Below are positions 1,582 through 32,404 of a stretch of DNA of 49,410 nucleotides, piece by piece; the first letter of the stretch is position 1; every line of letters begins with the position of its first letter. This stretch comes from Perkinsus chesapeaki ATCC PRA-425. Its lineage: Eukaryota > Protista > Perkinsozoa. The translations under genes were made by a program, and so were the position numbers. The stretch lies in contig JAAPAO010000229.1 in NCBI GenBank assembly GCA_013115145.1, positions 1 through 49,410 of the forward strand, in the 5' to 3' direction. Below the pieces are notes generated by a model that worked only from the letters and a program-made list of their open reading frames with translations, was not told the origin of the DNA and did no database searches.

Positions 1582-1587
1582 GTTTGG

Positions 1588-1604
1588 ATGATGATGATGA
1601 TGAG
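1588..1604. repeat. (GAT)n trinucleotide microsatellite
   Basis: gatgatgatgatgatga downstream of GOT1. Similar short (GCA)n, (CCA)n, (GGA)n and (CAT)n runs are frequent in introns of the 31-48 kb block. Confidence 0.6.
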
Positions 1605-2195: not shown

Positions 2196-3705
2196 ATGGT
2201 CGATGCTGTAGATGATCTTTATCATCTATTGGAAGAATCGTCACCTTCAGAACCCCAAGGGTTACCGGCTTGAGTTCGGCATGCCATTAAATGCATTACC
2301 GTCTGCTTTTGGACCACCACGCAGTCCAGTAAAGGTCCTATGTGGCCACCACGGTGCAGATTGCTTGATCCTATAATGTGACCGCAGTCAGTAACAGGTG
2401 ATAGAATTGTGATGAAATGGTCATGTAGTGATGATGACATCGGTGAAGGAGGGTGCCAAAACATACTCGTAAAGATGTAAGTCTTCAACAGTTCCCTTTT
2501 AAACCTCTCCCTGTGAGGTATGGCGTCGATCGGTCAGCGTGTGAGGGATTCTTCTATATAAAATGTCGACTGCAACATGAACGAGCACCAATACGGGATA
2601 TCTATTTTGAAGGTGTTGTTGTTTTTCATGTGGTCTACTCGATCACCACTCGCGCAGGTCAATGGCGACATCCAGTCACTGAAGGTGAAGTCGACCGGGA
2701 AAGAGTCCAACTGGATTATCACCTGAAGTACGTGCAAATGGAAGGTAGCTGATGAAGATGATGCGCTTGAGACACTTCGGCATCCTTCTCCCACTCAGAT
2801 GGCAGATTCAACTTGAACGTATTGAGCCTCAATTCGGTGGGAAGCCAAGCCTGGCAACTCTCCCAGCAGCGTTGAGTTTGACAGGTCCTCCGCGTTGGGG
2901 CTGGTGGACGGACATGTGGTGGACGACTTATGGCATCTACAGGCAAGGAAGTGTAGGTGAGGGAAAGTCCAAGGAGGAGAGGCTTTGGGCTGCTTTTAGA
3001 TGGCATTTCTGTACACTGTGTCGTGAGCCTGATGAGGTTATCGATGATGGTGTATTACGCGTAAACGAGGACAATGAAGTAAGTGGGACAACTCTTAGAT
3101 GCAGAGAATGCAAGCTTGAATGGTTCGTGAATTTAGGATAGTGAAGATACCGATGTAGACGAAGTGATCGTATCTGATTTACCCAAGGATCGACGTGGTA
3201 GCTTCTGTTCTCCCACGTTGGCTAGTTGTCCATCGTTCAGGTGGCGCACCGACTGTAGACGATTTCATACGGAAGCATACAAAAGGGATGAGGTCAGGCG
3301 AATAGGCCACCAGATGGGGGAAGAAGGCCCTTTTAGGGAAGAGTTGTGGAAGGAATCTCAGCAGTTCATTTCGAACGAAACAGAACGTCGAGCACGATTG
3401 AGGGAAGAGGCCAGGAGGCATGACCGCCCTCCTAAAGTCGTATCAGTCATTGGCCTGTTAGGATCATAGCTCCCGAAGTGGAGGCGTACTGGAAATCACT
3501 GGAGAGATCAGAACGCTCGAGGGCTCGTGGAATGTTGGTGTAGGCTATAAGTTGGCTATGTGATGGAGGCAACAGCTCATTCTACCTCAGCGGGATCTTC
3601 ATTGCGGTTGTTTTGATTGGCGCCTTGCATAGCTGGTTGAGCGAACGCCACCGTCATCTGGCATCTCGTGTCAGCTTTTCTAGCGATGGTTATGTCGACC
3701 TTTAA
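2196..3705 (+). CDS. Hypothetical multi-exon protein with a possible C-terminal transmembrane helix
   Basis: Series of short exon-like segments bounded by GT...AG, from MVDAVDDLYHLLEE to GIFIAVVLIGALHSWLSERHRHLASRVSFSSDGYVDL*. Exon phase was not fully resolved and no family was recognised. Confidence 0.4.
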
Positions 3706-3773
3706 CTGCCTTTATTGATTGCGTTGTTAATGTATGATGTGATGATGCTAGTAGTTTATTTATTCCCTGTCCC

Positions 3774-6081: not shown

Positions 6082-6201
6082 AGTGCCGTTGTTACTCCTC
6101 TTACCTTATTGTTGTGTTAAGTGGAAACGCAAAAGATAGCTCAAGCAAAATGAGACAGTAACATACTGCTGGTGACGATGGAGGACAGCATGCCTCAATG
6201 A

Positions 6202-7813
6202 TCAATCAACAATATTGGCTGCTCCAAGCGCCACTAAAACGTCTGGGTCCAACTCCGTATGGAATCGAGGGTTAGCGTCCTCAAAGGCAGCATAAACAGT
6301 ATCCTGCACGATAGGCATCCGACTGGCCCCGCCAGCGAAGACAACGTCAGAGACGTATCTAAAACGAATGATTGCCTCTCAACTACGTAAGGCGAACCTA
6401 CTCCGGATCCAACATCACCAAACGCATGCTACGATGCATGGTATCGTATATCCGATCGAGTAACCCACTAGCTGCCTCTGCGAACTCATCTCTTGTGATC
6501 ACTTCACCGCCTAGTAGCACCGGATATTAGTCCAAACACACGAGTGTTGCCTTACCGCAAACCGTTGTGCTGTCGCGTTCAGTGAGCTCTCGCTTAACTC
6601 TCTCGGCCATCACGTTAGAGTAACTGCATCATCCAAAATTAACCGGGAGATACAGCGCTCAGTTTCCGACTGTTCAGGATGGTTTGGGTTCCGTTTCTTG
6701 CATTTAACATTGATGAGCTTGGCGAGGACTCGGTCGAAGTCCTGACCACCGAGCTGCTGGTCTCCAGAGGTAGACAAAACCTAATAACAGATCGGATGGC
6801 TTACAGAACCCCCATGCCAATCTCACATTGATGCTACCAGAGAAGGTAGCAACCTGTAAAACTGAAACGTCCAGAGTGCCTCCGCCAAGATCAAAAACCA
6901 CCACAACGCGAGAGCTTGCTCCTCCTGATCGCTGATGGAGATTGTACCTTCACACAGTGTTGGTAGATTGATTAGTTACACGGCACTCACGCCACAGCAG
7001 CTGCCACTGGTTCTTCGATTAGGCGAGTGACGGTGAGGCCGAGCTCTTCATATACTCGACGAGTAGCATCCCTTTGGGGTTGATTGAATTCAACTGGTAC
7101 GCAAATGACGACCTTCTTAGAAGCTCCCGAGCTGCCGACCACAGCCTCCACCTGGATTAATTTACTCGAAAAAAATAGTTCGTGGAGAAAGCCTTACAGA
7201 TTTCAAGAGCTCACCGACCACTTTGACGCCCACGTCCACTGGCGACACCGACAAAGAGTCATTCAAAACCAAGAAGCGAACTTCATCTGTGGAGTTCGGT
7301 GACGGAACCACTTTGAAAGGGTGTGCATCCGAATCGAAGGACCTAGCCGAGGCTACCTTGGAAGCTGAAGCTCGTATCGACCTACACTTCTTCAATTCCT
7401 TTCCCTATAAATCGCTTAGCGTGATATATTGTATCCTCAGGATACGACTCTTGCCGTGCTACTGCGGCATCACCAACCACACAGCTACCATTTGGAAGGT
7501 AACTCACTATAGATGGCACCAATGGTAACCCTGAAAGGGAGCAATATGATGCTTGAGGGGGGCTAACAAGAATCACCTGTTGAATAATGGTTTACGATGG
7601 TTGGGCTGACAGATTTATCAGATTCTGAGGGCTTGATCGCCACAACTGAGAAGGACGTCCCAAGGTCGATGCCCACCACCTGAAGGTCGTATTATAATTG
7701 AGGGCAGACTGTGACCGTACATAGCTCGGCGACCGGTAGCCAAAGTGGGCCAAGATCGCTGAGATGGCCGCAAGAAGGATGGCTATGACGAACAGGGCCT
7801 GGGGATCCAACAT
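6202..7813 (-). CDS. Hsp70-family ATPase, HSPA13/STCH-like: N-terminal hydrophobic leader, nucleotide-binding domain only (multi-exon)
   Basis: MLDPQALFVIAILLAAISAILAHFG leader, then VVGIDLGTSFSVVA, PSIVSY, YHAKRFIG, AVIAVPAKFN, EEPVAAAVA, VFDLGGGTLDVSVL, LGGQDFD, VVFAGGASRMP and DPDVLVALGAANIVD*. The stop TGA (6202-6204) comes directly after the ATPase domain. Confidence 0.88.
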
Positions 7814-9042
7814 CGTCGAGGAGGATCAGAAAACTGCCAAAGAGCAGGATCATCCCACCCAAACAGAAACGGAGAGGAACTGAAACGTGAAAGGAACAGT
7901 GGAAGGTCAAAGGTCTCGGAGGTGCTCCCATGGAGGCTTTGGGAATGCATTACGGGTGGCTAAGACTAGCGTCTTGAGCTCGTAGGATATATATCCCTGA
8001 AAGGTGACGCTCACTAAGCGCATCGAGATGTGCCGCTGTGAACTAGCAGCTCTCACCTTGCAATAGCCATAGAGTAGCAGCCTTGCCACGATGCCTTCAG
8101 CATAAGTATCACAGACATGGCCGTCCTCATTTACACCCTCACTGACCCTCAATGCTGCGGTAATTACTGGCATCGGTATTTGGTTAGAGCCGTAGATGTC
8201 CGTAGTGCGCTCCAATAGGTTTCTATCAGAATAGCTTAATTCAATTGAACATTATGCATCTTACCTATATACGCACCAAACAAGCATTCCGTCTAGAAAG
8301 AAAGGTAAGATCTGCCTTCCCGTCCCAGCCTCATCATCGAAGGTAAGAGCCTCTGTTCGGCAACGCTGAAGTAATAAAGCTGCATTACCATCGGAAGGGG
8401 ATCGGGCTGCTTACTTCATATTCTGCGAGGTTACCTTGCCTTATAGCGCTCAGTAGAGGCCCCCACCGTGCAGTCCTAAAAATAATTTGTAAGGTAGCGA
8501 CCGAGCGATAGTGACTGAAGCGTACAGCTGGGTCTGGTCTAACAGGTGCTTAGAAGGCAATACGCCTTTTCGGACTTTGCATGGAATGAGGAGGTTTAAT
8601 ATTCGTTGCTTGGCTTTTATGTGATGCGAAGGACAGTACCTGTAGGAACTCCACCGAGTTTATGTATCCACTAACCCGCCTACTTCAGTGCGTCCTCCAG
8701 TCTGTGTTCAGCATCGGCCATTCTGGATTGGAAGAGTCTATGCCGTGCCCAAAAGTATTGGGTTTTCACACGGATGGAATTGGGGCAGAGTCCAAGGTAT
8801 CGCTCATCGACATTCCTAACAAGAAGGTCATTGAGAACTAGCAGCGTCCGGTGGGCCATACCGAAGTATTGGTTCCAGAGCCGCGGGCTGCTCCATTGCT
8901 GTACATATTTGCATTATCTCTACCAGTATGACGAATAGACCAGGCATGAGGGCTTTATCATACCGTGTGTCTCGGCGAATTCGGATAAATCTAATCGGCA
9001 CACGACACTAGGGTAGGCCCTAGAGGGGGCCGCTAACGGTGT

Positions 9043-10049
9043 TTACTCTTCCCGAAGAGCGTCCAGCACTCGCTGTTGGTATCGGTGATAGTGCGAGCTA
9101 CCTCCAGCTCCGCTTCCCAGACCACCGGCACCTGACACTCGATTGACGTCGGCGGTCAGATGCGTAATAATACTATCATCAGCATCCGACTCTTCGCTGC
9201 TACCTGATACCCGATGGTGCGAATCCAAGTACTTGGCGAATCTATCCAGGGAATACAATGACGCTTATTTTCTGCAGGGCTCACTTCCTAGTGAAGGCCG
9301 CCACCTCCTGTAGAACTGGAAGCATGGTCGCCACCCGGTGGAGATTTCTGACATGACATTTGGATTTGGGGTACATGCCCTTTCTACTCTTCTTTTTCGT
9401 CTGCCTCCGCGGAACTGCTAATTTCGGAATCGCTGGGGGATGCCATGCTGCTGCTGGAAAATCCATTTATTCCAGGGCCAACCTCTCCTCGGTATATATC
9501 GGTCATCTCGCCTAGAGAGTGTTTCGCAATGAGATAAGTTCTACTAGGTACTACGTAAGAGTTTCAGACAGTACGTTATAGCCTCTGATGCGCTACGTCC
9601 GCTCCTGAGAGCTTCGGCGATCCGCTTGGACGATAGCATTGCCACCTTCACAACGTTTACTATGCAGGAAGGGTATTCCGCGAGCGTCTGGCCCCTAAAG
9701 CGTAATCAAGCTGTTTCATGAGCATGACAGAGTGACTACACAATAGTCTTTATATGCGAGTCCGACTGCCCATCTAAAGCTTCCAAGCCATGCAGGAAGG
9801 TCCTAATCTCCTGACGTGCAATATTTCCTGAAGGAAGAGCATCACGCGGAAACTCAAGCGATCGGGTTATGTTTAAGCCTTAGGATGTGCAAATTAAAGC
9901 TTTACTTTGTTTGAAGAACTGACCAACTTCGAATGATGGCGGTGGCTGGGTGTACCTTGGTTGTCCTCAGCTGCTGCCCAATCCAAGGCATTTCCTAGCT
10001 CCTCAGCGTACTCTTCTATTGATGGAGCATGTGATGGTGATGATGCCAT
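9043..10049 (-). CDS. Hypothetical multi-exon protein(s)
   Basis: Exon-like pieces MASSPSHAPSIEEYAEELGNALDWAAAED, ..KSKCHVRNLHRVATMLPVLQEVAAFTRK and YSLDRFAKYLDSHH...LDALREE*. Linkage into one gene is not established. Confidence 0.3.
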
Positions 10050-10446
10050 TCGATCGCGGGGGCCACGGGAAAATGGCTGCAGAAGCGATGACCGACGAAA
10101 CCTATCTGGAAACAACCTCTCTCCTAGCGGAATCCATGCTAAAGATTCAATGTGATATCTCGCCTGCTGAGGCTACCCAACCGACGTCGTCATGTCGCTA
10201 ATGTACCCGATAAAGTTTATTTGACCAGTGATTCGACTGATGACCCTTCAGTGATTAAGCGACTCTCCCCCGCAAACTTCAACTCAAACTTCGAACAGGA
10301 TCTCAACAGGATAAATTATTATACTCTATAAGGAGCGAACGGCAAAATTAATGTTGATAAACGAATAGTATGCCTATAGCTTTTCAGCCCAAGGCTACAA
10401 TAATGCTCAACGTGCACAATAGTACACTGGTAGTGAAGAAATAAAT

Positions 10447-13400
10447 TTAGTACACCTCAGGGCAGTAACGGTCATTATCAGCAAGGTCTTCGAAAATCTC
10501 CTTGGCCTTGTCCATGGAACAGTTCTCACCCTTAGCAATAGCACGATAGATGGCGCTCTTGATATCATTCTCAACCTGGCCAGCCTGTCCGCAAAGATAG
10601 AAGTAACCACCCTTCTTGATCAGATCCTCGTAAACACGAGCACTGTTCTCATCAATCTTGTTCTGGACATAGACCTTCTCCTTCTGATCACGAGAGAATG
10701 CGGGGTGGAGCTCAGTGATAGCGCCCTCCTTAGCGTAACCCTCGAGTTCGTCGTGGAAGATGTAATCCTTATCGTGATGACGGCAACCATAGAAGAGCCA
10801 CATGGGACCAGTCTCAATGCCTTGACGCTTCATCCAAGCGCGCTCTTGAGAGAAGGCACGGAATGGAGCAAGACCAGTACCAAGACCAGCCATGATCATG
10901 GGAGTCATTGGGCTCTCAGGGAACTTGAAGCTACCGGAAGTAACAGTGGAAGTAACCTTGTGACCGGGAACGATACGCTGGATGTAGTCAGTAGCGGTAC
11001 CAGTCCTCTTAACACCAGAAGGAGTAGTCCAGTTCACAACGACAACAGCAAGCTCAATGGCCTTAGGGCCAACGAACCTTGGAGAACTGGCGATGGAGTA
11101 AAGCCTAGGCTTAGTGCAAGGAACAAGGCTGATCAACTGATCAAGAGAAGGATGAGCACTTGTGTACTTGTTGAGAACATCAGCGAATGTAACAGTCTCA
11201 TTGGCAAGCTTGGTATAAAGCTCACGTCCCTTGGTGTCATCGGGGTTACCAATGGCAGAAAGTTCCTCCTTCTCCTTAGGATCCTGGGCGAACTTAGACA
11301 AAGACTTGTAGAAGGCTCTGTTAGGACGACCGAAGATATCCAAGGATTCCTCGAACACCTGAGAGATGGTACGAGGACGAAGAGCAGCAGCGCGCTTGCG
11401 GGCGTCGACGTTCTCAGCTACAGGGGTGATCTGGACCATCTCCTTGGGGTTGAGGCCGTAGGACTGAAGGAAAGCACCGACTCTACCGGCTTCGTTCATG
11501 GGGTGAATGTTGAGAACATCACCGAGAAGATAAGGAAGATCCTGACCATCCTCGAGCTCGAAACGCAAGTGACGGATATCTCTCTCGTAGTCGGAAGGAG
11601 TCAGACGATCGTTCTTTTTCAAGCCGAGCTGGATAGTTTGAGGAGGCATGATCCTCTCATAAGGAGCAACCACGGTCTCATCAGAATCAAGCTCACGGAC
11701 CTCGAATAAGGAATCAGGGACGGAACCATCATCAACGGGCTCAGGGGCCTTCACAGCCTTCCAGTAGCTCGGCATCCAATCCTCGAAAGCAGTCTCATAC
11801 TTATCATCATCCTGATCGTTACCAAGACCAACCGAGATAGTCCTCTGACCGCCCAATTCAGCAAGAAGCTCATCAATGCTCTTACCGGCAGTGCAGAAGT
11901 GATGATAACTGGAATCACCCAAGGCAAAGACACCGTACTGAACACCATCCAGGAGATGAGCATTCTGTGTGTCCTTGACGGCAGACTGCAATTGTGAAGT
12001 GAAATCCAGAGCTGTTCTGGGAGTTTCACCCTCACCGGTAGTAGAGCAAAGCACCATGAGGTTCTTGTTCTCCGGGAGCTCGTTAACATCCATCTCATCA
12101 CATTGCATGACCTTAACGGCATAACCACGCTGGCGAGCCAATTCGGCAACACGATAGGAGAGTGCCTCGGCAGTACCAGTCTCAGTACCGTACAAGAGAG
12201 TCAGTGGCACACCATCGGAGATGTTCTCTTGACCCTCGGAGGCCCACCTCTGATACTTGCTGTAACGCTCGTGGACCCAATCGGTAAGCTGGGACATGTA
12301 CTTGTTGTAGAGATCGGCATCACGCTTCTTCAAGGCACCGAAACGCATTTCGTTCTTAATAACGGCGTCCATGCTCTGAGTGAGCCTCTTAGTATCAAGA
12401 ACGAAGGGGTTCTTGCCCAACTTCTTCAACATGGGGTTATAACGATACAACGGGAAGTAGCCAGAGGCAGCAACAGTGGCCTGATGCTGCATAGTATGGC
12501 TCATGCCATCAAGATTCTTATGCTCAATGCAAGGGGCATAAGCGATGACAAGAGAGCATCCATCATAAGCTTCGGCCTCGGAGAAAGCCTTCAAAGTCTG
12601 CTGGTAGTTAGCACCCATGGAGACACCGGCAACATATACGGTACCATAGTCCATAGCCATCTCACCAAGATTCTTCTTCTCGACGTCGTGACCGAGGGTA
12701 GCAAACTTGGCAACAGCACCAAGGGGAGTGGCCTTAGACTTTTGACCTCCAGTGTTGGAGTAAGCTTCAGTATCCAAGACCAAAACGTTCAAATCCTGAC
12801 CAGAGGCAAGGACGTGATCGAGTCCACCATAGCCAATATCGTAACTCCAACCATCACCACCAATGATCCAGTTAGAGATCTTAGGAAGCAAGTCGGACAT
12901 ATCAAGGATGTCCTGAATAGCAGGGTCCTTGCTGGCCTCGGCCTTAAGAAGAGGAGGAAGTGACTTCGAAAGAGCCTCACAGATGGCGGGGTTCCTGAAG
13001 TTCTCAACCCACTCGTTGAGCTGAGTGTACAACTCAGGAGACAATGGGCTATCTTTTCCTTCAAGAAGTACCTCTTGGACACGAGCCTTAAGAGCCTTAC
13101 GGCGGACAGCGGTGGTCACAGCCATACCCATACCGTACTCGGCGGCATCTTCGAAAAGACTGTTAGCCCAGGCTGGACCGGTACCATCGGGTCTTGAAGT
13201 ATAAGGAGTAGAACCATAAGGAGCACCCCAGATACTAGAGCAACCAGTGGCATTAGCGATCATCATACGATCACCGAACATTTGAGTAAGAAGGCGAACA
13301 TAAGGAGTCTCACCACATCCAGCGCAGGCACCGTGGAACTCGAGGAGAGGTTGATGGAACTGACTGCCCTTAAGGGTAGTGGTATCAAACCTGGAAGAAC

Positions 13401-15939
13401 GATCAGGAAGGCCCATAGCATACTCCCAGTTCTTAGACTCGGTCTCGGAAACATCAGCCAAGTGCTTCATGGAGAGCGCATCATCAGGGCAAGCGTTGAC
13501 GCAGACCTCGCAACCAGTGCAGTCCAAAGGAGAGACCTGAATCCTGTAGTGGAGACCGGCAACTTCAGCACCACCCTTGGCCTTGCGAGTCTCGAAAGTG
13601 TCAGGCTTTGAGTCAACTTCAGCTTGAGACAGCAAGAAAGGTCTGATAACAGCGTGAGGACAAGACATGGAGCATGTATTGCACTGAGTGCACTTGTCCA
13701 TATCAACCATAGGGACCTCAAGAGCAACACCACGCTTCTCGACCTTAGCAGTTCCAAGAGGAACCTTACCGCCGACGATGGAGTCATCAGCGAAGGCACT
13801 GACAGGAATTTCATCACCATTCAAAAGAGCGATAGGAGCTTGGATGTTCTTAGTGAACTTAGACCTATCGATGGCGCTCTTTTCCTTGGCAAGACCGGGA
13901 ATGGCGTTGTCGTAAGTCTGCTCGTAATGCAGCATCTCATCAGTGAGGTTCTTCCACTCAGCGGGGACCTTGATCTCAGTAATAGCAGCAAGAGCCTTAT
14001 CAATCATTTCGTAGTTCTTCTGGACAACAGCTTCACCACGATGACCATAACTCTTCCTGATAGTGTTCTTGTAGAGTTGAATGCACTCCTTATAGTCCAT
14101 CACATTAGCAAGCTTGAAGAAAGCAGACTGCATGACGACGTTGATCATACGGCCCATACCGCATTCCTCAGCAACCTTGAAGGCATCAACATTGAAGACC
14201 TTGGCGTTCTTCTCAGCAAGAGCCTTACGGACACCAGCAGGAACATGCTTGTTCCACTCCTCAACAGTACTGAAGGGAGAGTTCAAGCAGAAAGTACCAC
14301 CCTCCTTCAAGTGATCAGTCATACGATACATATCCAAGTAGGTAGGGTTATGGCATCCAACGTAGTCTGCCTTACTGACAGCGTAGTATGACTTGATGGG
14401 CTCAGGACCAAATCTCAAGTGAGACATAGTCAAGCCACCGGCCTTCTGTGATCCATAAGCGAAATAAGCCTGGACGAAGAGATCGGTGTTATCGCCAATG
14501 ATCTTAGTGGCACTCTTGTTAGCACCGACAGTACCATCAGAACCATAACCGTAAATAAGACACTCAACGGTCTCTGGGTGAGAAACGTTGATCTCCTCGT
14601 CAAGAGGAAGAGATCTGTGAGTGACATCATCATCAATACCAACAGTGAAGTGATCCTTAGGGTACTGAGAGTAAAGGTTGTCAGCGACAGCAGCAACACA
14701 CCTAGGAGTGAACTCCTTCTGTCCGAGACCCCAGCGACCACCAATGACCTTGATGTTCTTGCGATCAGACTCCTGAATAGTACTGGCAACATCCAAATAA
14801 AGAGGTTCACCAAGAGAGCCAGGCTCCTTAGTCCTATCCAAGACAGCAATGCGCTTCACAGACTTGGGCAAAGATGCGAGGAAATCCTCAGAAGACCAAG
14901 GACGATAAAGACGAGGCTTCAGGACACCAACCTTCTTGCCTGACGAGTTGATGTAAGGAAGTGCTTCCTCAACAACACTGGCACCAGAACCCAACACCAC
15001 AACAGCAGCCTCGGCATCCTTAGGACCAGTCCACTGGAAGAGATCATAATGACGGCCAGTAACGGCACCAACACGCTCCATCTCCTCCTTAACAATCTCG
15101 GGGGTCTTATCATAGAAAGCATTAGAGGCCTCGAACTGCTGGAAGTAGACATCTGGGTTCTCATTGGTACCACGGACGTAAGGACGGTTGGGGTTGAGTG
15201 CTCTCGCGCGATGAGCATTTAATGCCTTCATATCGACCATTCTCCTCATCTGGTTGTACGGCAAAGTATCAACCTTCTCAATGCAATGAGAAAGGCGGAA
15301 GCCATCGAAGAAACTGACGAAAGGAACTCTGGCCCTAAGAGTGGCCAAGTGAGCGACAAGAGCCATATCATGGCACTCCTGGACGGTATCGGCATCGATC
15401 ATGGCAAAACCGGTTTGACGAACAGCCATGACATCTTGATGATCACCGAAGATAGATAAAGACTGACCAGCGAGAGCACGGGCAGCAACATGCATAACAC
15501 AGGGAAGAAGCTCACCGGCGATCTTATACATGTTGGGAACCATAAGGAGAAGACCTTGACTGGCAGTGTAAGTAGTGGCCAAAGAACCAGATGCTAAGGC
15601 ACCGTGAAGGGCACCGGCAGCACCGGCCTCGGATTGCATTTGAGTAATCTTAGGAACATCACCGAAAGCATTCTTGACGCCCAACATGGACCATTGCTCG
15701 GCAAGCTCGGCAGCAGGGGAGGAAGGAGTGATAGGGTAAATGAAGGCAGTATCCATCATACCATAGGACACGTTGCACACAGCAGTGCAACCATCCATGG
15801 TCTGCCATTCACCACCACTAGGAGAAGCCTTACCAGCGAAATGCCTCGAGCTGGCAGCAACCGCGGCAGTTTGTGCGGGTGCAGCGAGGCTACGAGCTGC
15901 GACCGCCAGCGAGCGGCCGTGATTCATTGTAGACAACAT
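10447..15939 (-). CDS. PNO: Pyruvate:NADP+ oxidoreductase copy 1 (PFOR-flavodoxin-FNR fusion), intronless, 1830 aa
   Basis: Single ORF; the first ATG is at 15939 (the ORF track starts at an upstream TTG). PFOR motifs: [74 protein letters not shown]. Flavodoxin motif: LLYGTETGTAE. FAD/NADP motifs: PRLYSIASS, GLGTGLAPFRAF, FYGCR, AFSRDQKEKVYVQ, YLCGQAG. Confidence 0.97.
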   Translation of the reverse strand: MLSTMNHGRSLAVAARSLAAPAQTAAVAASSRHFAGKASPSGGEWQTMDGCTAVCNVSYGMMDTAFIYPITPSSPAAELAEQWSMLGVKNAFGDVPKITQMQSEAGAAGALHGALASGSLATTYTASQGLLLMVPNMYKIAGELLPCVMHVAARALAGQSLSIFGDHQDVMAVRQTGFAMIDADTVQECHDMALVAHLATLRARVPFVSFFDGFRLSHCIEKVDTLPYNQMRRMVDMKALNAHRARALNPNRPYVRGTNENPDVYFQQFEASNAFYDKTPEIVKEEMERVGAVTGRHYDLFQWTGPKDAEAAVVVLGSGASVVEEALPYINSSGKKVGVLKPRLYRPWSSEDFLASLPKSVKRIAVLDRTKEPGSLGEPLYLDVASTIQESDRKNIKVIGGRWGLGQKEFTPRCVAAVADNLYSQYPKDHFTVGIDDDVTHRSLPLDEEINVSHPETVECLIYGYGSDGTVGANKSATKIIGDNTDLFVQAYFAYGSQKAGGLTMSHLRFGPEPIKSYYAVSKADYVGCHNPTYLDMYRMTDHLKEGGTFCLNSPFSTVEEWNKHVPAGVRKALAEKNAKVFNVDAFKVAEECGMGRMINVVMQSAFFKLANVMDYKECIQLYKNTIRKSYGHRGEAVVQKNYEMIDKALAAITEIKVPAEWKNLTDEMLHYEQTYDNAIPGLAKEKSAIDRSKFTKNIQAPIALLNGDEIPVSAFADDSIVGGKVPLGTAKVEKRGVALEVPMVDMDKCTQCNTCSMSCPHAVIRPFLLSQAEVDSKPDTFETRKAKGGAEVAGLHYRIQVSPLDCTGCEVCVNACPDDALSMKHLADVSETESKNWEYAMGLPDRSSRFDTTTLKGSQFHQPLLEFHGACAGCGETPYVRLLTQMFGDRMMIANATGCSSIWGAPYGSTPYTSRPDGTGPAWANSLFEDAAEYGMGMAVTTAVRRKALKARVQEVLLEGKDSPLSPELYTQLNEWVENFRNPAICEALSKSLPPLLKAEASKDPAIQDILDMSDLLPKISNWIIGGDGWSYDIGYGGLDHVLASGQDLNVLVLDTEAYSNTGGQKSKATPLGAVAKFATLGHDVEKKNLGEMAMDYGTVYVAGVSMGANYQQTLKAFSEAEAYDGCSLVIAYAPCIEHKNLDGMSHTMQHQATVAASGYFPLYRYNPMLKKLGKNPFVLDTKRLTQSMDAVIKNEMRFGALKKRDADLYNKYMSQLTDWVHERYSKYQRWASEGQENISDGVPLTLLYGTETGTAEALSYRVAELARQRGYAVKVMQCDEMDVNELPENKNLMVLCSTTGEGETPRTALDFTSQLQSAVKDTQNAHLLDGVQYGVFALGDSSYHHFCTAGKSIDELLAELGGQRTISVGLGNDQDDDKYETAFEDWMPSYWKAVKAPEPVDDGSVPDSLFEVRELDSDETVVAPYERIMPPQTIQLGLKKNDRLTPSDYERDIRHLRFELEDGQDLPYLLGDVLNIHPMNEAGRVGAFLQSYGLNPKEMVQITPVAENVDARKRAAALRPRTISQVFEESLDIFGRPNRAFYKSLSKFAQDPKEKEELSAIGNPDDTKGRELYTKLANETVTFADVLNKYTSAHPSLDQLISLVPCTKPRLYSIASSPRFVGPKAIELAVVVVNWTTPSGVKRTGTATDYIQRIVPGHKVTSTVTSGSFKFPESPMTPMIMAGLGTGLAPFRAFSQERAWMKRQGIETGPMWLFYGCRHHDKDYIFHDELEGYAKEGAITELHPAFSRDQKEKVYVQNKIDENSARVYEDLIKKGGYFYLCGQAGQVENDIKSAIYRAIAKGENCSMDKAKEIFEDLADNDRYCPEVY

Positions 15940-15964
15940 TAGCAAAAGGGCGCCTTAAAAAGTG

Positions 15965-15990
15965 CTGAAAATGAACAACAATAGAAAATG
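15965..15990 (-). promoter_or_regulatory. Pyrimidine-rich tract plus AG, 25 nt upstream of the PNO1 ATG (candidate splice or trans-splice acceptor)
   Basis: Minus strand reads ...ctattgttgttcattttcAG|cactttttaaggcgcccttttgctaATG. Comparable AGs lie at 22409-22410 (PNO2) and 28862-28863 (PNO3). Confidence 0.35.
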
Positions 15991-16800
15991 CTCATTCGTA
16001 AGGACCTTTCATCATCTCCCACAACAGATGTTATGCTAGTGTGAACACTAGGTATCGTGCAGTCCCGAGCTAATGATCTTTGTGTCAGCTTAGGGCTATC
16101 TGTCCCCGAAAATAATATCTTCCGTGCACGCAGGGAATAATCGATTTAAACTGCGCGAGCGGCCTATGGCTGATCCACAGGTGATGCTGCTTGCAAGGGG
16201 TGGTGATTTCTATATCACGCCACTGAGTTCCTCTCTGGCCTTTAGTGGTGAATGTCTGGACAGCAACGCTACTATTCTACCCATCAGCGGCTATGTAAAC
16301 GCTCCAAAGACGCAACCCTAATCAAGTATGGGTCTACACTCTTACTACCAGCTCTACTGGATGCATCCCTCAAGCACCGTTGAACCTCGTCACTTCAGTT
16401 AACACAACACATCGAGACTAACGTAAATGGAGACTGACGATCTGATCAGAAGTAGTCTGAAGAGTTGCATACAAGGCATTATCAAGCTATACAGACCCGC
16501 ACTTCAGACCCGACTTCGAACGATGAACTCGTTATACTTAGTAATCAATAAACAACGTAAGGGATCAAGTCGTCTAAACAGGATACACTACTTAACATCC
16601 GCTATACACATCCAGAATAAAGAGTAAACCAAACTGACTAAGACAGATAGATGTGAGTTTAAGGAGATGCACTCCTTTGATAATATTACACCGAGCTCAA
16701 AAGCTTCTATAAATGCGCTTGCACGCACAAAGCATGGCGAAGCATGCCACGCAAGCACGGGCTGCATCTTACAGATGCCTCATGCTCGATAGATTCATAC

Positions 16801-19800
16801 TTAGTAAACCTCAGGGCAGTAGCGACCAGCATCAGCAAGCTGTTCGAATATCTCCTTGGCCTTCTCCATAGAGACTCCCTCGCCAGCGGCAATAGCGCGG
16901 TAGATAGCAGTCTTGATGTCGAGCTCAACCTGGCCGGCCTGTCCGCAAAGATAGAAGTAACCACCCTTCTTGATCAGATCCTCGTAAACACGAGCGCTGT
17001 TCTCATCAATCTTGTTCTGGACGTAGACCTTCTTCTGCTGGTCACGAGAGAATGCGGGATGGAGCTCAGTGATAGCGCCCTCCTGTACAAAGCCTTCAAG
17101 CTCGTTACCGAAGATGTAATCCTTATCGTGATGACGGCAACCGTAGAAGAGCCACATGGGACCAGTCTCAATGCCTTGACGCTTCATCCAAGCGCGCTCT
17201 TGAGAGAAGGCACGGAATGGAGCAAGACCAGTACCAAGACCAGCCATGATCATGGGAGTCATTGGGCTCTCAGGGAACTTGAAGCTACCGGAAGTAACAG
17301 TGGAAGTTACCTTGTGACCGGGAACGATACGCTGGATGTAGTCGGTGGAAGTACCAGTCCTCTTAACACCAGAAGGAGTAGTCCAGTTAAGGATCACAAC
17401 AGCAAGCTCAATGGCCTTAGGACCAACGAACCTGGGAGAACTGGCGATGGAGTAAAGCCTTGGCTTAGTGCAAGGAACAAGGCTGATCAACTGATCAAGA
17501 GAAGGATGAGCACTTGTGTACTTGTTGAGAACATCAGCGAATGTAACAGTCTCATTGGCAAGCTTGGTATAAAGCTCACGTCCCTTGGTGTCATCGGGGT
17601 TACCAATGGCAGAAAGTTCCTCCTTCTCCTTAGGATCCTGGGCGAACTTAGACAAAGACTTGTAGAAGGCTCTGTTAGGACGACCGAAGATATCCAAGGA
17701 TTCCTCGAACACCTGAGAGATGGTACGAGGACGAAGAGCAGCAGCGCGCTTGCGGGCGTCGACGTTCTCAGCTACAGGGGTGATCTTGACCATCTCCTTG
17801 GGGTTGAGGCCGTAGGACTGAAGGAAAGCACCAACTCTACCGGCTTCGTTCATGGGGTGAATATTGAGAACATCACCGAGAAGATAAGGAAGATCCTGAC
17901 CATCCTCGAGCTCGAAACGCAAGTGACGGATATCTCTCTCGTAGTCGGAAGGAGTAAGACGATCGTTCTTTTTCAAGCCGAGCTGGATAGTTTGAGGAGG
18001 CATGATCCTTTCATAAGGAGCCGCCACAGCCTCGGTAGCATCAAGCTCACGGACCTCGAATAAGGATTCAGGGACGGAACCATCATCAACGGGCTCAGGG
18101 GCGTTCACAGCCTCCCAGTAGCTGGGCATCCAGTCCTCGAAAGCAGTCTCGTATTTGTCCTCGTCACGGTCATTACCAAGACCAACAGCGATGCTTCTTC
18201 CGGCACCTAGCTTAGTGAGGAGATCATCGATGTCCTTACCAGCGGAGCAGAAATGCTGATAGCTAGAATCACCGAGGGCGAAAACACCATACTGGACACC
18301 ATCGAGAAGGTTAGAGTTACCACTCTCCTTGGCGGCAGCCTCCAGCTGGGAGGTGAAGTCGATAGCGGTCCTGGGAACCTCGCCCTCACCGGTAGTAGAG
18401 CAAAGCACCATGAGGTTCTTGTGCTCGGGGAGCTCGGAAACATCCATCTCATCACATTGCATGACCTTGACGGCATAACCACGCTCGCGAGCCAAGTCGG
18501 CAACACGATAGGAGAGTGCCTCGGCGGTACCAGTCTCAGTACCGTACAAGAGAGTCAATGGTACGCCACTGGAGGTATTCTCTTCAACAGCAGCCCATCC
18601 ACGATACTTCTGATATCGCTCTCCAACCCACTCGGTCATCTCCTTCATGTAAGTGGCATACTTCTCAGCATCACGCTTCTTGAGAGCGCCAAAACGCATC
18701 TCATGGCTGATGACATCGTCAACACTGAGGGTTAACTTCTTGGTGTCAAGAACGAAAGGATTCTTGCCCATAGGCTTCAATGCAGGATTGTAGCGGAAGA
18801 GAGGGAAGTAACCAGAATTGGCAACAGTGTACTGGTGCAACATTGTGTGGCTCATTCCATCGACATTTTTGTGCTCGATGCAAGGAGCGTAAGCAACAAC
18901 CAATGAGGAGCCATCATAAGCCTCGGCCTCGGAGAAAGCCTTCAATGTCTGTTGATAGTTAGCACCCATGGAAACACTGGCGACATAAACTGTACCATAA
19001 GACATAGCCATCTCGGTCAAGTTCTTCTTCTCAACGTCGTGGCCCATAGTAGCAAACTTGGCGACTGCACCAAGAGGGGTAGACTTCGACTTTTGACCAC
19101 CAGTGTTGGAGTAAGCCTCGGTATCCAAGACCAAGACGTTGATATCCTGACCAGAAGCAAGGACGTGATCGAGTCCACCATAGCCAATATCGTAACTCCA
19201 ACCATCACCACCAATGATCCAGTTAGAGATCTTAGGGAGCATATCGGACATGGCCAAAAGCTCATCGATGGCCGGGTCCTTGCTAGCCTCGGCGGCGAGC
19301 AACTTAGGGATAGACTTCGAGAGAGACTCACAGACCTTAGGGTTGCTGAAGTTCTCGACCCACTGCTCCAACTGGGTGTAGAGCTCAGGGGAAAGCGGGC
19401 TGTCTTTACCTTCCAAGAGCATCTCCTGGACACGAGCCTTGAGGGCCTTGCGGCGCACAGCATTAGTCACAGCCATACCCATACCAAACTCGGCGGCATC
19501 CTCGAAAAGACTGTTAGCCCAGGCTGGACCACGTCCGTCGGGTGTGGTAGTGTAGGGAGTAGAGCCATAAGGAGCACCCCAGATACTAGAGCAACCAGTG
19601 GCATTAGCAATTACCATACGATCACCGAACATTTGAGTAAGAAGGCGAACATAAGGAGTCTCACCACATCCAGCGCAGGCACCGTGGAACTCGAGGAGAG
19701 GTTGATGGAACTGACTGCCCTTAAGGGTAGTGGTATCAAACCTGGAAGAACGATCGGGAAGGCCCATAGCATACTCCCAGTTTTCTCCAGAAGTTTCCAT

Positions 19801-22386
19801 GACGTCAGCGAGATGCTTCATGGAGAGAGCATCATCAGGACAAGCGTTGACGCAGACCTCGCAACCAGTGCAATCATAGGGAGACACCTGAATCCTGTAG
19901 TGGAGACCGGCAACCTCAGCACCACCCTTAGCAGGTCTGCAGTCGAAAATAGCGGGCTTGTTATCGACCTCGTACTGAGAGAGGAGGAATGGTCTGATAA
20001 CAGCGTGCGGGCACGACATGGCGCAAGTGTTGCACTGAGTGCACTTATCCATATCGACCTCCGGGACCTCAAGAGCCACACCACGCTTCTCGACCTTAGA
20101 AGTTCCAAGAGGGACCTTACCGCCAACCAACTCGTCGGAAGCGAAGGCGCTAACAGGGATGTCATCACCCTTGAGCAAGGCGATAGGAGCCTGGATATTC
20201 TTCGTGAACTCGGCAGTATTCATATGATATGCCTTGTCCTTAGCCAACCTACCAATAGCGTTATCGTAGGTCTTCTCATAGTTCAACATGCGATCAGAAA
20301 GGTTCTTCCACTCAGCGGGGACCTTGATCTCAGTAATAGCGTCAAGAGCCTTATCAATCATTTCGTAGTTCTTCTGGACAACAGCTTCACCACGATGACC
20401 ATAACTCTTCCTGATAGTGTTCTTGTAGAGTTGGATACTCTCCTCGAAGTCCATGACCTTGGAGAGCTTGAAGAAAGCAGACTGCATGACGACGTTGATC
20501 ATACGGCCCATACCGCATTCCTCAGCAACCTTGAAGGCATCAACATTGAAGACCTTGGCGTTCTTCTCAGCAAGAGCCTTACGGACACCAGCAGGAACAT
20601 GCTTGTTCCACTCCTCGACAGTACTGAAGGGAGAGTTCAAGCAGAAAGTACCACCCTCCTTCAAGTGATCAGTCATACGATACATCTCGAGATAAGTAGG
20701 GTTGTGGCATCCAACATAGTCAGCGTGCTCAACAGAGTAGTAGGACCTAATGGGCTCAGGGCTGAAACGCAAATGGGACATAGTCAAGCCACCGGCCTTC
20801 TGTGATCCATAGGCGAAATAAGCCTGGACGAAGAGATCGGTGTTATCACCAATGATCTTGGTGGCGTTCTTGTTAGCACCAACAGTACCATCAGAACCAT
20901 AACCGAAGATTAAACACTGAACAGTGTCGGGGTGAGAGACGTTGAGCTCCTTACCAAGAGGGAGTGAGAGGTGAGTGACATCATCCTCGATACCAACAGT
21001 GAATCTCTCCTTGGGATGGTCGGCATAAAGGTTGTCAGCGACGGCCGAGACGCAACGAGGGGTGAACTCCTTCTGGCCAAGACCCCAACGGCCACCAATG
21101 ACCTTGACGTTGCGGCCAGCTTCCTGAATGGTGCTGACGACATCCAAGTAGAGAGGCTCTCCGACGGAGCCAGGCTCTTTAGTCCTATCCAAGACGGCAA
21201 TGCGCTTGACTGATTTGGGCAAGGCCGCAAGGAAATCCTCAGAAGACCAAGGACGATAGAGACGAGGCTTCAAGACGCCCATCTTTTTGCCCTGGGCGTT
21301 AAGAATAGGCAATGTCTCCTCAACCACACTAGCTCCTGAACCAAGGACAACAATGGCACTGTCAGCGTCTTGAGGACCAGTCCATTGGAAGAGATCGTAA
21401 TGACGGCCAGTAACAGCGCCCACACGATGCATCTCATCCCTGACAATTCCGGGAACCCTGTCATAGAATGCGTTAGATGCCTCAAACTGCTGGAAGTAAA
21501 CATCAGGGTTCTGGTTAGTGCCACGGATATAGGGACGGTTAGGATTGAGAGCACGAGAGCGGTGAGCATTAAGGGCCTTCATATCAATCAACTTACGCAT
21601 CTCATTGTATGGCATAGTATCAATCTTTTCGATACAATGAGATAGACGGAAACCATCAAAGAAGTTAACAAAAGGCACACGAGCACGAAGAGTAGCCAAG
21701 TGTGCGATGAGGGCCATATCGTGGGACTCCTGTACAGTGTCGGAGTTGATCATGGCAAAACCAGTTTGACGAGCGGCCATAACATCTTGATGATCACCGA
21801 AGATAGACAAAGCCTGACCAGCGAGAGCACGGGCAGCAACATGCATAACACAGGGAAGGAGTTCTCCGGCAATTTTATACATATTAGGAATCATAAGGAG
21901 AAGACCTTGACTGGCAGTGTAAGTAGTGGCCAAAGAACCAGATGCTAAGGCACCGTGAAGGGCACCGGCAGCACCGGCCTCGGATTGCATCTGGGTGATC
22001 TTAACAACGTCACCGAAGGCGTTCTTGACACCGAGCTCCGACCACTGCTCAGCAAGCTCAGCAGCAGGAGAGGACGGGGTAATGGGGAAGATAAAGGCTG
22101 TATCGGTCATAGCATACGATACATGACAGGTAGAAGTGCAGCCATCAACGGCTTGCCACTGACCTCCGCCTGAAATAGACAACAATCCTCATCAACTGAC
22201 AAATATTGTCAAACGACGTGAAACGCGAAAGTACAAAATATCCACACTAATCCCTCCCGAACTACTTGGTGAAGTTTTTCCAGCAAAGTGCCTGGATGCA
22301 CTAGTAACAACGGCATTTTGGGCTGGTCTGATGGCGCTGCGAGCTGCCAATGCCGCGGTGCGGCTATTATGCATAGTCGACAGCAT
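16801..22386 (-). CDS. PNO: Pyruvate:NADP+ oxidoreductase copy 2, two exons (22266-22386, 16801-22169)
   Basis: Same full motif set as copy 1. Removing the phase-1 GT-AG intron 22170-22265 joins MLSTMHNSR...RHFAGKTSP to SGGQWQ, collinear with GKASPSGGEWQ in copy 1. Confidence 0.97.
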
Positions 22387-23207
22387 AGGTTAAGAAACGC
22401 AGTGCCAACTAAAACAACAGAGAATAACAAACCAAAGGCAGATAGTTAACTATATGAAGAACGAAGACCCTTCCTTAGGCAGTAAAAACCTCCAAAAGAC
22501 AGAGCGGCACAGCTCTTAAGCTCGGACACAAAAAGAGACAATGCTGGCCTGAGCCTATGTTACTAATTCACTACGCATGATAAGTAACTAGCCACAGGCT
22601 ATCCCTAGCCTAGCTCCACCATGATTCTTGATTCAATATGTCAATCTCCTTAATTATGCCTACACAAGTAACCAATCTCCTCCTAAGTGTTTGCACACCT
22701 TCCAGCTTTCGGGCGAGCGCGAATGACCGCTGTAGATGCACGCAAACCCTTTTTGTGCTTTGTCTGCGATCACACTGTGATTATGACAGGAGTAATACTT
22801 TTACAACTAAAAGTCGTTAATGCGAAGAAACATGAACTTCGTCATCGTTAAGGTGAAGCTCATTCCCTTATTCTCCACTAGCATTCACTCAGCGAAAGAT
22901 ACATAGCGTGAAGGCTTAGGATCCTGACACAAAAAATGGGGGAATTATTCCGACCATTGATCAACTTCTACAACGCAACTCCACTTCCCTGGATTATCGT
23001 CATTCACAGTACACAGACGTATGCCCAGCAAATGTGATGTACAGAAGAAGCGCTTCCGCAAGACTGTACGATGACCATGAGGCGAAGACTGGAATGAACG
23101 ATATGGGGCTGCTACCTTCACGATATAAACATAGACTGTTATTTATCTATTATGGAGTACGAAAAAATCTAAATAATGGCACAATGTGTACACAGATGAA
23201 GATTCAC

Positions 23208-28847
<5,640 letters not shown>

Positions 28848-29207
28848 ACGAAGCAAAATAACTAGGCAACTTATTAAACCTTACAAAAGCTCGTCCTATT
28901 TATACACCACTGCCGCTAGAATGAACGACACATTCGGCGTGGGACACTCGATGGAAGTAGCGCACGCCCAGAAACTCCTTGATCGAAGCACTTGAGAGAC
29001 GGGGACTACGGAAAGTGAGGGTCGATGGACATACTGCACAGATGCTAATATGATGCGAGTTGGGATGATCGATTTGCGCAACATGGGATTAAATTCGACC
29101 TTTACCGTATCTTGCACGCTTCAACCTTGGACGTAAGATATCTTGCGCTGCAGACAACCACGGTGCAATATCTCTATTACATTACCAAAAGCCACGATTG
29201 CTGTTTT

Positions 29208-31104
29208 ATGCCAGCAACGACACAACCTTCGTCTTTGAAGTATAACGACTATGAAGATCCCTTGAAGGTAGCAAACTTGCTCCTGGTTTCGCCAGTGCAA
29301 CACCCATCGCCTCAGGAGTCTTTATCTGAACCATTGCTTGCTGCTGATGATGATGAAGGGCGGCGTTCTACACCTTCAGGCGAAACATCTCATCTGAACT
29401 CCTCTCGGGCGTGTATTATCGTGTGTAAGTTGGAACCTTGAGAGGTTTGATTCACACATTTGAAGGTCTGTTCACATTTCTATTGGCATTTAAACCAAGC
29501 CAGCCTCACATGGCACAGTACTTACGACAAGTTAAAGGTTTCTCACAGGGCGACATCGTCCACTACATATTCCCTATTGCAGCGTAAGATCCTGCCAGCT
29601 CTATAAACAAGTACATCTCTCTTGTTAGTTACGCTCAATTTGTCTTTGTTATCTTACAAGGTTACATTTGTGAATTCCTCGGGTAAGTATCCTTGGTGAA
29701 ACTCAAGGCAGTGAGGCATCAGATATAAATATGCCATCATCATGGGAGCTGCTGGAAGATTGTGTACTCGTCTCTGCATGCTCTATGGCACGGAAATATG
29801 GCACTTTCAGCTCAGTGAGATTTGCTACAGTAAGATGGCCGCATGGTGGCGCTCTACTCGACATCGCGGCCATTAGGCATGGGCTCGGCCATGTTGATTG
29901 TATTTGGCGGTTATATATTCAATTTGGTAACCAAAGAGAACTATCAAAGGATAATAGCCTTACAACAAATGGCCACCCTCGGGGGGCATGTAAAGCATCT
30001 TCTTCACACTTCCTTATCATCATCTTACAGGTCTCAGCTGGATATGTTGGTGACATCCTTATTAATGTATTCAACTGTGACTTAATCGTCTTGATGTACA
30101 TCTCCGCAAGTAATAGTTACACTCTGCCTCCTAGCAATTGGTTTCCTTCCAGTATCGGTAACCTCTGGCTTTCTCTTATCGTTCTCCTTCCCTGAAGTAT
30201 CCTATACCAAGACTCCATCCCTAGTGAAGGTGTTCCGTTCAGTTAAGCGTGTATACTCCAATCCAGTATTCCTGCTCATGGTAAGACTTCCCCCGTCTAG
30301 ATCTCATTTATCGTTATATCAGTTGATGCTATGGTGTGTGCTCACATCTGTCCACTCACTCGTATGGGGCTACGAGACGTCCCTTTACGACTATCTGAAA
30401 GTTGAGCAACATTACGTTGGAGACTATAACGGTGTAGTGGCCAGCAGCGGCGTCCTCCTAGGTAGGTCCTCTCACCCTCCCCCCTACACCATGCCTCATC
30501 AGGTGCCCTCTGTGCAATGTTGTCGAATAACCCTTGGGTACTTGCCCAGCATATGACCTATCCTCACCGTTCCATGCTTCTCGAGGGAGCTGCCATAGGA
30601 GTATGCATCTTCCTAATGGGCCAGCCCTACATCGCCACCCTCAGTATTGGTTTTATATTATACTTTGGTACATATACCATCATGAACACTTCATTTATCG
30701 GGCACTGTGGAAGTAGCCAAGACCCTCGCAGATACATAGCTGTGACTTCCCCATTCTAGGATTCGGTGCATCCATCGAAGATGTCCCCTCTACAGCTCCA
30801 AAAGCCAGCAATGGCGGCGGTCACTTTGCAGCTCTTTTCACGGCCAATTTCCTCCTCTCACAATCTCTCCAAACAATACTAACTTGGCTAATCTACTCCC
30901 AACTAAAGCTCGATGTAATCCTCCTGTATGATCTACATGTCCTGCTGCACCATCCCTTCCACAGGTTCGTCAAGCTTGCCTGTGCATGTCGGTATACATT
31001 GGTGTGTCCATAGCCCTGGCCGCTGGGGCCGCTACGATAATGTAATCCTTGTTGATGCTCCTATATACTGTCTCTATTTCAGATACGCCACTAGGCGGCG
31101 ATGA
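29208..31104 (+). CDS. SLC19-family MFS transporter (reduced folate carrier / thiamine transporter-like), multi-exon
   Basis: Spliced product ...ACIIVCLFTFLLAFKPSQPHMAQYLRQVKGFSQGDIVHYIFPIAAYAQFVFVILQGYICEFLGYKYAIIMG...FQLSEICYSMGSAMLIVFGGYIFNLVTKENYQRI...DYNGVV...YATRRR*. It parallels SLC19 hallmarks as I recall them: RP.E.F...YL, YSYL...VFLLTDYLRY.PV, MQL.E.FY, YIFSLV....YQR, YNG.VEA. Confidence 0.85.
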
Positions 31105-31303
31105 TACTTCTTAATGTCTTTTCAATGCAACATTGCGAACTACTGTCTTCTTATTAACATGTGTTTGTTTATAAGTTAACAACTCATCTCCATGGAGGAT
31201 TTGAAACAGTATTTAATACGCTCATTCATCAATCGATCAACTCACTTCACTGCAGAGTATACCTGCAGTTGATGCATAATTACGTGGCGCGCGAGAATTA
31301 TCC

Positions 31304-32404
31304 TTACGGTATCTTATCAGCGTAGAGGCACTTCTCTGAGACTTCCTTCTCTGTTACAGTTGTAACACGAATCACGCCACCAGAGGAGCCATCACGAGCC
31401 ATGGCATGGGCGACAGCCTTCGCCACGAAATCCTAAACTAATCGATAACACCAAGTAGTAGCAGCAGGCGGTTGGTGACCTCAGCCTCCTCTCTGTTCAT
31501 GTCTGGACGATAAAGGTGATCCACTAGACCAGTGATATAGGTAGAACTGAGGAGGACGGGCAAATGATGGGAGAGCTGAGAAGAGCGGGGCCTACCCAGA
31601 GCCACCAGTGGCGATATCCTGCTTAAGGATGGTACCACCGAGCGGAATAGAATATACCTGTTGTCGATGATGATGATATAACAACGCTTGTGAGATATGT
31701 TACCTGAGGGCCCTCGGTCTGGTCCCAACCAGCCACGATAAGGCCAGCAGTAAGGAACTGTTTATTGTTGTAGGAGAGGAGCCTCATAAGATTGGCAGCT
31801 GTCTTGACCTTTGGTAGACGATCCAAAGGGAGATCATTCGAATGAGCATTAAGGAAGTACTTAACCTTTGAGCTCAGAGACTGAACAACATAAATAGCAA
31901 CATTCTATCAAGAGATAACGTACTTGAGTATCAGCTGCTGAACCACTGCGGCATACAAATATCCTATCATGAAGTCGAGTTACCTTACGGCTAACTCTAT
32001 TGGCAACATAACCACCTGCAATAACAACAACAACTGTTATCATCACAGCAGCAGCAGCAGTGGGCTGATGGAGGAGACCTACCAGTACTGGTCCTTGAAT
32101 CAGCTCCGAGGATTACACCATCCTTGAACTTCATGGCCATAATGGTCGTACCTATACCATACTGTAGACGAAGGATGCTGTTGTTGCTGCTGCCTACCTG
32201 TCTGGATGCCCTTAGCTGGGCCGTTGTCTGAATATCCCATATACTGCATCAGATCATCAATCTCATCATCGTTATTTTCAACAACTCCAGCGACTCTGAA
32301 GAGGAGGCCACCACTCGACTGGTCAAAGCAGCGACGATAACTTACCCCATATCCCCAGCATGCTGCTGTTTAGCGAACTGTTGCTCCGCGATAAAGGTGG
32401 CCAT
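31304..32404 (-). CDS. PSMB6: 20S proteasome subunit beta 1 (multi-exon)
   Basis: Propeptide, then G|[53 protein letters not shown], later GGSGSSYITG and [13 protein letters not shown], ending YADKIP*. Confidence 0.93.

Follow-up and report, generated by a model that had tools for sequence, protein, structure and literature searches.

Does the head-to-head placement of an SLC19-like transporter gene beside genes for enzymes that use thiamine pyrophosphate (TPP) mean that cofactor uptake and cofactor use are coupled? The question is raised by contig JAAPAO010000229.1 of the draft genome of Perkinsus chesapeaki (GCA_013115145.1), the whole of which (49,410 bp) was analysed and is hereafter called the window. 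P. chesapeaki is a relative of the oyster parasite, and Perkinsus is a commercially damaging genus of shellfish parasites. The window carries three tandem genes for pyruvate:NADP+ oxidoreductase (PNO) on its minus strand, and the start of the third diverges from that of the transporter gene on the plus strand. An earlier interpretation made from the letters alone (the sequence-only reading) had proposed that the two genes share a control region and belong to a functional cluster. We consider it fairly likely, instead, that the adjacency is incidental, reflecting a genus-conserved gene order in a compact genome, and that the transporter is a carrier of a vitamin-like substrate.

True coupling would place a vitamin transporter in a cluster with an enzyme using the vitamin, unusual for a eukaryote, and would point to a drug-accessible route in a genus of shellfish parasites, as inhibitors of thiamine uptake of the amprolium type exist. 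What is gained here is a documented negative for the cluster hypothesis, together with a corrected transporter gene model in which the first transmembrane segment (TM1) is restored, two divergent Perkinsus SLC19-family carriers with predicted pockets unlike those of all characterised members, and a conserved candidate promoter motif.

Conservation of the gene order

The elements of the junction are the following:

23208 to 28847, minus strand: PNO3, four exons (28847-28749, 28699-28412, 28353-28207 and 28103-23208), 1808 amino acids (P0003, FOL47_003960)
28848 to 29207, no strand: divergent intergenic region separating PNO3 from the transporter gene, 360 bp (516 bp in P. olseni, about 1.07 kb in P. 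marinus)
29208 to 31104, plus strand: transporter of the major facilitator superfamily (MFS), SLC19/Folate_carrier family, 12 exons, 472 amino acids, ATG at 29208 and TGA at 31104
31247 to 32404, minus strand: proteasome beta-type subunit gene, convergent, its stop 142 bp from the transporter stop

The ATG codons of PNO3 (28847) and of the transporter (29208) diverge with 360 bp between them, just where the sequence-only reading had placed them. The annotated gaps nearby measure 124, 154, 115 and 143 bp; the divergent gap is 2-3 times longer than its neighbours and is not unusually short.

In P. olseni, an orthologue of PNO3, 93% identical and with introns in the same pattern, is followed by a 516-bp gap, a head-to-head SLC19 orthologue and the proteasome gene. 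The transporter gene of P. marinus is split over two scaffolds: on GG681386 (L001), its 5′ half adjoins the 5′ end of a PNO gene, between two 100-N gaps, and GG680784 starts with its 3′ half. The two scaffolds overlap within the gene (window 29858-30120), and GG680784 is collinear with window positions 29858 to about 48100, a span that takes in the proteasome, TIP49, COG7 and tRNA synthetase genes. An arrangement in which the P. marinus transporter is unlinked from PNO, on a separate scaffold, was considered and rejected, as the scaffolds overlap inside the gene and are broken by 100-N gaps.

The synteny expected by the sequence-only reading is therefore found within the genus, where the pair is adjacent in both other species, as is the whole stretch, and was unseen at the five PNO loci fetched elsewhere. 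The junction between transporter and PNO is no better conserved than the other junctions over at least 35 kb, and since every junction over that distance is conserved, the conservation of the pair is uninformative on the pair itself. Outside Perkinsus, none of the five loci, which represent three different neighbourhoods (three mutually syntenic metagenomic contigs, Durusdinium trenchii, and one contig of other arrangement), has a Folate_carrier gene within 10 kb of PNO. A functional gene cluster, understood as linkage that exceeds the background synteny or arises again in independent lineages, was thus not found.

These results bear directly on the model advanced by the sequence-only reading, namely that an importer of thiamine or its phosphorylated forms is co-transcribed with PNO3 from a bidirectional region, as a cofactor-supply cluster. 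The TPP motif present in all three PNO copies speaks in its favour; against it stand the conservation at the level of background collinearity, the linkage unseen at the loci fetched outside the genus, and the fact that the association was spotted post hoc, out of a large choice of TPP enzymes and of potential neighbours. Together with the evidence from the spacer and the pocket given below, this makes the model improbable in our judgement.

The metagenomic contigs with the PNOs nearest to those of Perkinsus (61-64% identity), which are the three mutually syntenic ones and are eukaryotic, are compact and intron-poor; in these contigs (L005 and others), a 2-Hacid_dh gene lies divergent upstream of PNO and an RRN3 gene downstream, and 3-HAO and Methyltransf_15 genes are also present.

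The spacer and a candidate control element

A comparison of the spacers by k-mers yielded one conserved element, the 10-mer TATCTTGCRC:

29108 to 29117 and 29139 to 29148, plus strand: TATCTTGCRC pair, 60-100 nt 5′ of the transporter ATG

At the blastn level, the spacer has no similarity to that of P. olseni or P. marinus, the flanking exons being 70-80% identical. The 10-mer occurs twice in P. chesapeaki, twice in P. olseni (L003 3004-3013 and 3075-3084, plus strand) and once in P. marinus (L001 4830-4839, minus strand), and in all three species it lies on the strand of the transporter and proximal to it. The 49-kb window contains three exact copies, against 0.3 expected, none of them upstream of any PNO start. 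The element overlaps in part with the palindrome AGATATCT. We regard it as a candidate for a proximal promoter or transcription start site element, and its position points to a transporter-specific rather than a symmetric, shared signal.

The proposal of a shared control region, which had been drawn from the short spacing, hence finds no support in a spacer that is unconserved, ranges from 360 to about 1070 bp, is longer than its neighbours, and bears its motif on one side. Promoter sharing by PNO3 and the transporter may be considered a generic possibility, with no evidence for this particular pair.

The transporter within the SLC19 family

That the transporter belongs to the SLC19 family, as proposed, was borne out by the Folate_carrier hidden Markov model: the annotated, N-terminally truncated protein (P0121) matches PF01770 (TC 2.A.48) with 108.9 bits (cut-off 27, E 3.2e-31), and exons 2, 4 and 5 match at collinear profile positions. 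Whole-protein comparisons were made with annotated P0121 (385 amino acids) and its P. olseni orthologue P0126, rather than with the 472-residue model. An exhaustive search of representatives with exon 9 recovered P0121, the other matches being spurious repeats, and word-indexed homologue searches with P0121 and with a four-sequence profile as queries found only four Perkinsus proteins.

The affinity of the transporter within the family was gauged by comparing profile scores against solved structures. For the profile built from the four Perkinsus proteins, the scores were 137-142 bits for SLC19A3, 113-120 for SLC19A1 and 116 for SLC19A2. The best match is thus the human thiamine transporter 2, a point for the coupled model, as is membership of SLC19 itself; against this, the scores of A3 and A2 fall on either side of that of A1, so that the transporter would not be specifically of thiamine type and would have no specific affinity to the human thiamine pair A2/A3. 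It would rather lie outside the animal A1/A2/A3 split, as the orthologue of no single animal paralogue.

Human SLC19A3 (PDB 8S4U, 8Z7R, 8XV2) belongs to the same Pfam family and matches collinearly over both predicted MFS halves (E 2.6e-40 to 7e-39); the N-half aligns with 113-118 bits and the C-half weakly, with 30 bits. The Perkinsus protein differs from it in a much shorter TM6-TM7 loop and an acidic N-terminal extension of about 60 amino acids. The reduced folate carrier, human SLC19A1 (PDB 7XPZ, 7TX6), is also of the same family (E about 1e-33), and the equivalents of its E123 and Y126 are kept in the transporter, which differs from it in having neither the three residues that bind folate by its glutamate tail (Arg133, Arg373 and Gln377) nor Glu45. 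Hydropathy gives some 10-12 segments, compatible with 12 helices, and an AlphaFold2 model built from the four-sequence alignment (mean pLDDT, the predicted local distance difference test, 34) was unusable for the fold.

The substrate pocket

Pocket residues of the N-domain were mapped on human SLC19A3 through a gap-free alignment, and those of the C-domain through a weaker profile alignment. In SLC19A3 numbering, the transporter keeps F56, T93, E110 and Y113. It is changed in the N-domain at E32Q, W59A, W94R, L97M, M106F, V109S and E120L and, by the weaker alignment, in the C-domain at N297G, E320A, K380F and M384T; E120, K380 and M384 correspond to Arg133, Arg373 and Gln377 of SLC19A1. Consequently, only 4 of the 11 residues of the thiamine site (E32, F56, W59, T93, W94, E110, Y113, N297 and E320, plus E120 and M384) are retained, and the folate-site residues Arg133, Arg373 and Gln377 are Leu, Phe and Thr.

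The key polar thiamine contacts in human SLC19A3 are E32, E110, N297 and E320, and W59R, W94R, Y113H and E320K are listed as disease mutations that place a positive charge in the pocket (PMC11447181). The transporter has Arg at the W94 position, matching the W94R of the human list for biotin-thiamine-responsive basal ganglia disease (BTBGD). The replacement of E32, W59, W94, E120, N297 and E320, with this Arg among them, stands against thiamine import in the coupled model. With respect to folate, specificity is decided by Arg133 and Gln377 of SLC19A1 (Glu and Met in A2/A3), Arg373 being conserved, and either R133E or Q377M abolishes folate transport by the human protein (PMC9794768).

The transporter could also be a folate or pterin carrier without any link to PNO, lying beside it by chance. 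The Pfam family is named Folate_carrier, the acidic thiamine residues are gone, and the W94 position has gained an Arg, which would be more favourable to an anionic or neutral ligand than to cationic thiamine; on the other side, Arg133 is replaced by Leu and Gln377 by Thr, the very positions at which mutation abolishes human folate transport, and the conserved Arg373/Lys380 position is Phe. On this balance we regard such a carrier as unlikely.

As the transporter has neither the thiamine-type nor the folate-type set of residues, neither substrate would be assignable from its pocket, in agreement with the caution of the sequence-only reading that the substrate cannot be assigned from sequence. 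As a rough estimate, thiamine is unlikely, a folate or pterin is doubtful, if slightly less so, and another substrate has somewhat the better prospects.

A second Perkinsus paralogue, P0128 of P. olseni (456 amino acids, intronless; L006, and L007 6531-7901), is 31% identical to the transporter and keeps E32, F56, W59 and E120, the last within the AAEV motif. Its gene is flanked by amino-acid transporter (Aa_trans) genes on one side and Snf7 on the other, far from any PNO. If either protein is a thiamine carrier, the unlinked P0128 would be the better candidate than the PNO-adjacent transporter, and the existence of a more thiamine-like, unlinked paralogue counts against the coupled model.

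The same can be said of the search for TPP riboswitches (RF00059): no Rfam family reached its gathering score in the window, and no TPP match with E<=10 was found in 28000-31600. The only TPP riboswitch reported in P. marinus is in the 5′ untranslated region of SSSP, a sodium:solute symporter gene (PMC4260697, Supp. Table S2), which makes SSSP, already published as thiamine-related, a rival candidate for the uptake of thiamine or its precursors in Perkinsus.

Evidence for coupling and the preferred interpretation

Several observations weigh against an incidental adjacency. First, the pair is head-to-head in all three sequenced Perkinsus species. Second, E110 and Y113, the chief contacts for thiamine's aminopyrimidine ring, are kept, along with F56 and T93, and the replacements in the C-domain rest on an alignment of about 30 bits and are of lower confidence. 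Third, SLC19A1 handles TPP (PMC9794768). Fourth, a different spacer of P. marinus has been shown to act as a promoter in both directions (bioRxiv 10.1101/2021.06.11.447996). Finally, the PNO fragment that adjoins the transporter in P. marinus (L001 5076-6606) has none of the PNO3 introns and is PNO2-like rather than PNO3-like, sharing 97.5% identity with the PNO2 orthologue over the latter's 5′ end and upstream region (9312-10845); no full-length PNO3 orthologue was found among the P. marinus matches. The fragment suggests a local rearrangement, a turnover of copies, gene conversion, or an artefact of the assembly such as haplotype mis-scaffolding, and with a PNO2-like adjacent copy the junction would have outlasted whichever of these took place.

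This last point could be extended to a selected, co-regulated unit, in which a remodelled SLC19 protein supplies thiamine, or exchanges TPP, for a TPP enzyme of high demand and the junction was kept through PNO turnover in P. marinus. Such a unit would be a rarity among eukaryotes, and we hold it to be improbable. The broader claim of a functional cluster coupling cofactor uptake to PNO was not upheld by linkage, spacer, pocket residues or riboswitch search.

Returning to the incidental adjacency that we prefer, the three tandem PNOs would probably act in the mitochondrion, where they would turn pyruvate into acetyl-CoA and produce NADPH. The expressed and spliced transporter gene would encode a 12-helix MFS carrier whose N-domain retains the ring-binding core, with the charged specificity residues of the human carriers replaced; from this combination we infer a small, heteroaromatic, vitamin-like solute. 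Its expression would probably depend on its own promoter, with the TATCTTGCRC pair as proximal element, and functional coupling with PNO would be absent.

Comparison with known systems

The closest parallel is found in Micromonas and Ostreococcus, where SSSF lies beside TH1 and THIM (McRose et al. 2014, PMC4260697), likewise a putative vitamin transporter next to vitamin-dependent genes in a gene-dense eukaryote. The prasinophyte transporters bear TPP riboswitches and respond to thiamine deprivation in Micromonas CCMP1545 (PMC4260697), whereas the P. chesapeaki locus has no riboswitch; moreover, the prasinophyte neighbours are TPP-making genes and the P. chesapeaki neighbour is a TPP-using enzyme.

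As far as our literature search reaches, a PNO-transporter linkage is undescribed, which does not make it meaningful: a Perkinsus folate transporter goes unmentioned, and the link is absent from the titles and abstract openings of papers that treat Perkinsus together with thiamine.

The PNOs of Euglena gracilis, Cryptosporidium and P. marinus, in the account of Rotte et al. 2001 as relayed by PMC3879968, share the domain order and cofactor motifs of those described here, and the P. marinus copies have already been published (PMC3879968). The P. chesapeaki proteins are 84-91% identical to the P. marinus copies. P. chesapeaki has three tandem PNOs with 0, 1 and 3 5′ introns, and P. marinus two full copies plus the 5′ fragment by the transporter.

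Transporter gene model and transcription

The exons of the transporter gene are placed as follows:

29208-29424, 29466-29583, 29629-29682, 29723-29829, 29877-29989 and 30031-30109, plus strand: exons 1 to 6
30153-30280, 30323-30461, 30503-30712, 30760-30914, 30965-31041 and 31083-31104, plus strand: exons 7 to 12

All eleven introns of this model are GT..AG and 40-50 nt long. RNA evidence came from contigs of two small public runs of about 5 Mb each, which supply splice joints, give depth that is non-quantitative, and cover the gene from beyond exon 1. Contig joints confirm introns 2, 3, 4, 5, 6, 7 and 9 exactly, and intron 8 is confirmed by a loose end that continues directly into exon 9; intron 10 is loosely supported by a loose end from a variant allele, close to where exons 10 and 11 meet. 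Introns 1 and 11 are predicted from frame and conservation, and the annotated C-terminus, ...IYATRRR, backs the last small intron. These joints establish that the gene is transcribed and spliced, and both the transporter and PNO3 are represented in the RNA contigs. An extra in-frame intron of 48 nt is possible at 29268-29315, a segment free of RNA cover.

The GenBank model, FOL47_003961, starts at 29510 and omits the first two exons and, with them, TM1, for which reason the start at 29208 is the better one. This is the first in-frame ATG, and the N-terminus that it opens, MPATTQPSSLKY, aligns with MPSPPHPSSAKY of the P. olseni orthologue, which begins with the same MP..PSS.KY pattern.

Some RNA contigs (window 29735-29962, 30383-30463 and 28219-28281) use the same splice sites as the window but are only 90-95% identical to it, their C>T and T>C differences being clustered, a sign that the RNA samples include another allele or a strain closely related to the sequenced one.

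The PNO genes

The two PNO genes more distant from the transporter are the following:

10447 to 15939, minus strand: PNO1, single exon without intron, ATG at 15939, about 1830 amino acids; orthologue of P. marinus P0002 (89% identity)
16801 to 22185, minus strand: PNO2 main exon, open reading frame (ORF) of 1794 amino acids; orthologue of P. marinus P0001 (91% identity)

The sequence-only reading was right in recognising three PNO genes. Each of the three minus-strand ORFs (10447-15945, 16801-22185 and 23208-28172) matches the Pfam profiles POR_N, PFOR_II, POR, EKR and 4Fe-4S, followed by Flavodoxin_1, FAD_binding_1 and NAD_binding_1, and all three copies have the TPP motif GDG...N, both CxxCxxCxxxCP motifs, the CxGCGE proximal-cluster motif and the flavin mononucleotide (FMN) motif. 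Thus, in each copy a single ORF unites PFOR domains I-VI, with TPP and three iron-sulfur (FeS) motifs, and an FMN/FAD/NADPH reductase: the three genes are intact pyruvate:NADP+ oxidoreductases, fusions of PFOR and cytochrome-P450-reductase (PFOR-CPR).

PNO3 is the most divergent copy (75-77% identity to PNO1 and PNO2); its ATG at 28847 is reached through three 5′ introns, as given by tblastn of the annotated 1808-residue P0003, and one of the three is confirmed by an RNA joint. Since the head of the main PNO2 ORF has no ATG, a short upstream exon is needed, which we infer to lie at about 22260-22410 by likeness to the 5′ region of P. marinus P0001. PNO1 and PNO3 open with N-termini that resemble mitochondrial presequences. 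The mitochondrial pyruvate dehydrogenase is absent from myzozoans (PMC3879968), and given this absence the label "anaerobic" that had been attached to the locus is an assumption.

To the left of PNO1 (window 1-10446), the ORFs gave no Pfam match. In the public annotation, the intact PNO2 ORF (window 16801-22185) is represented only by a product of 128 amino acids (L002 16474-18803), and PNO1 (window 10447-15945) is fused into a product of 2716 amino acids (L002 22921 onward).

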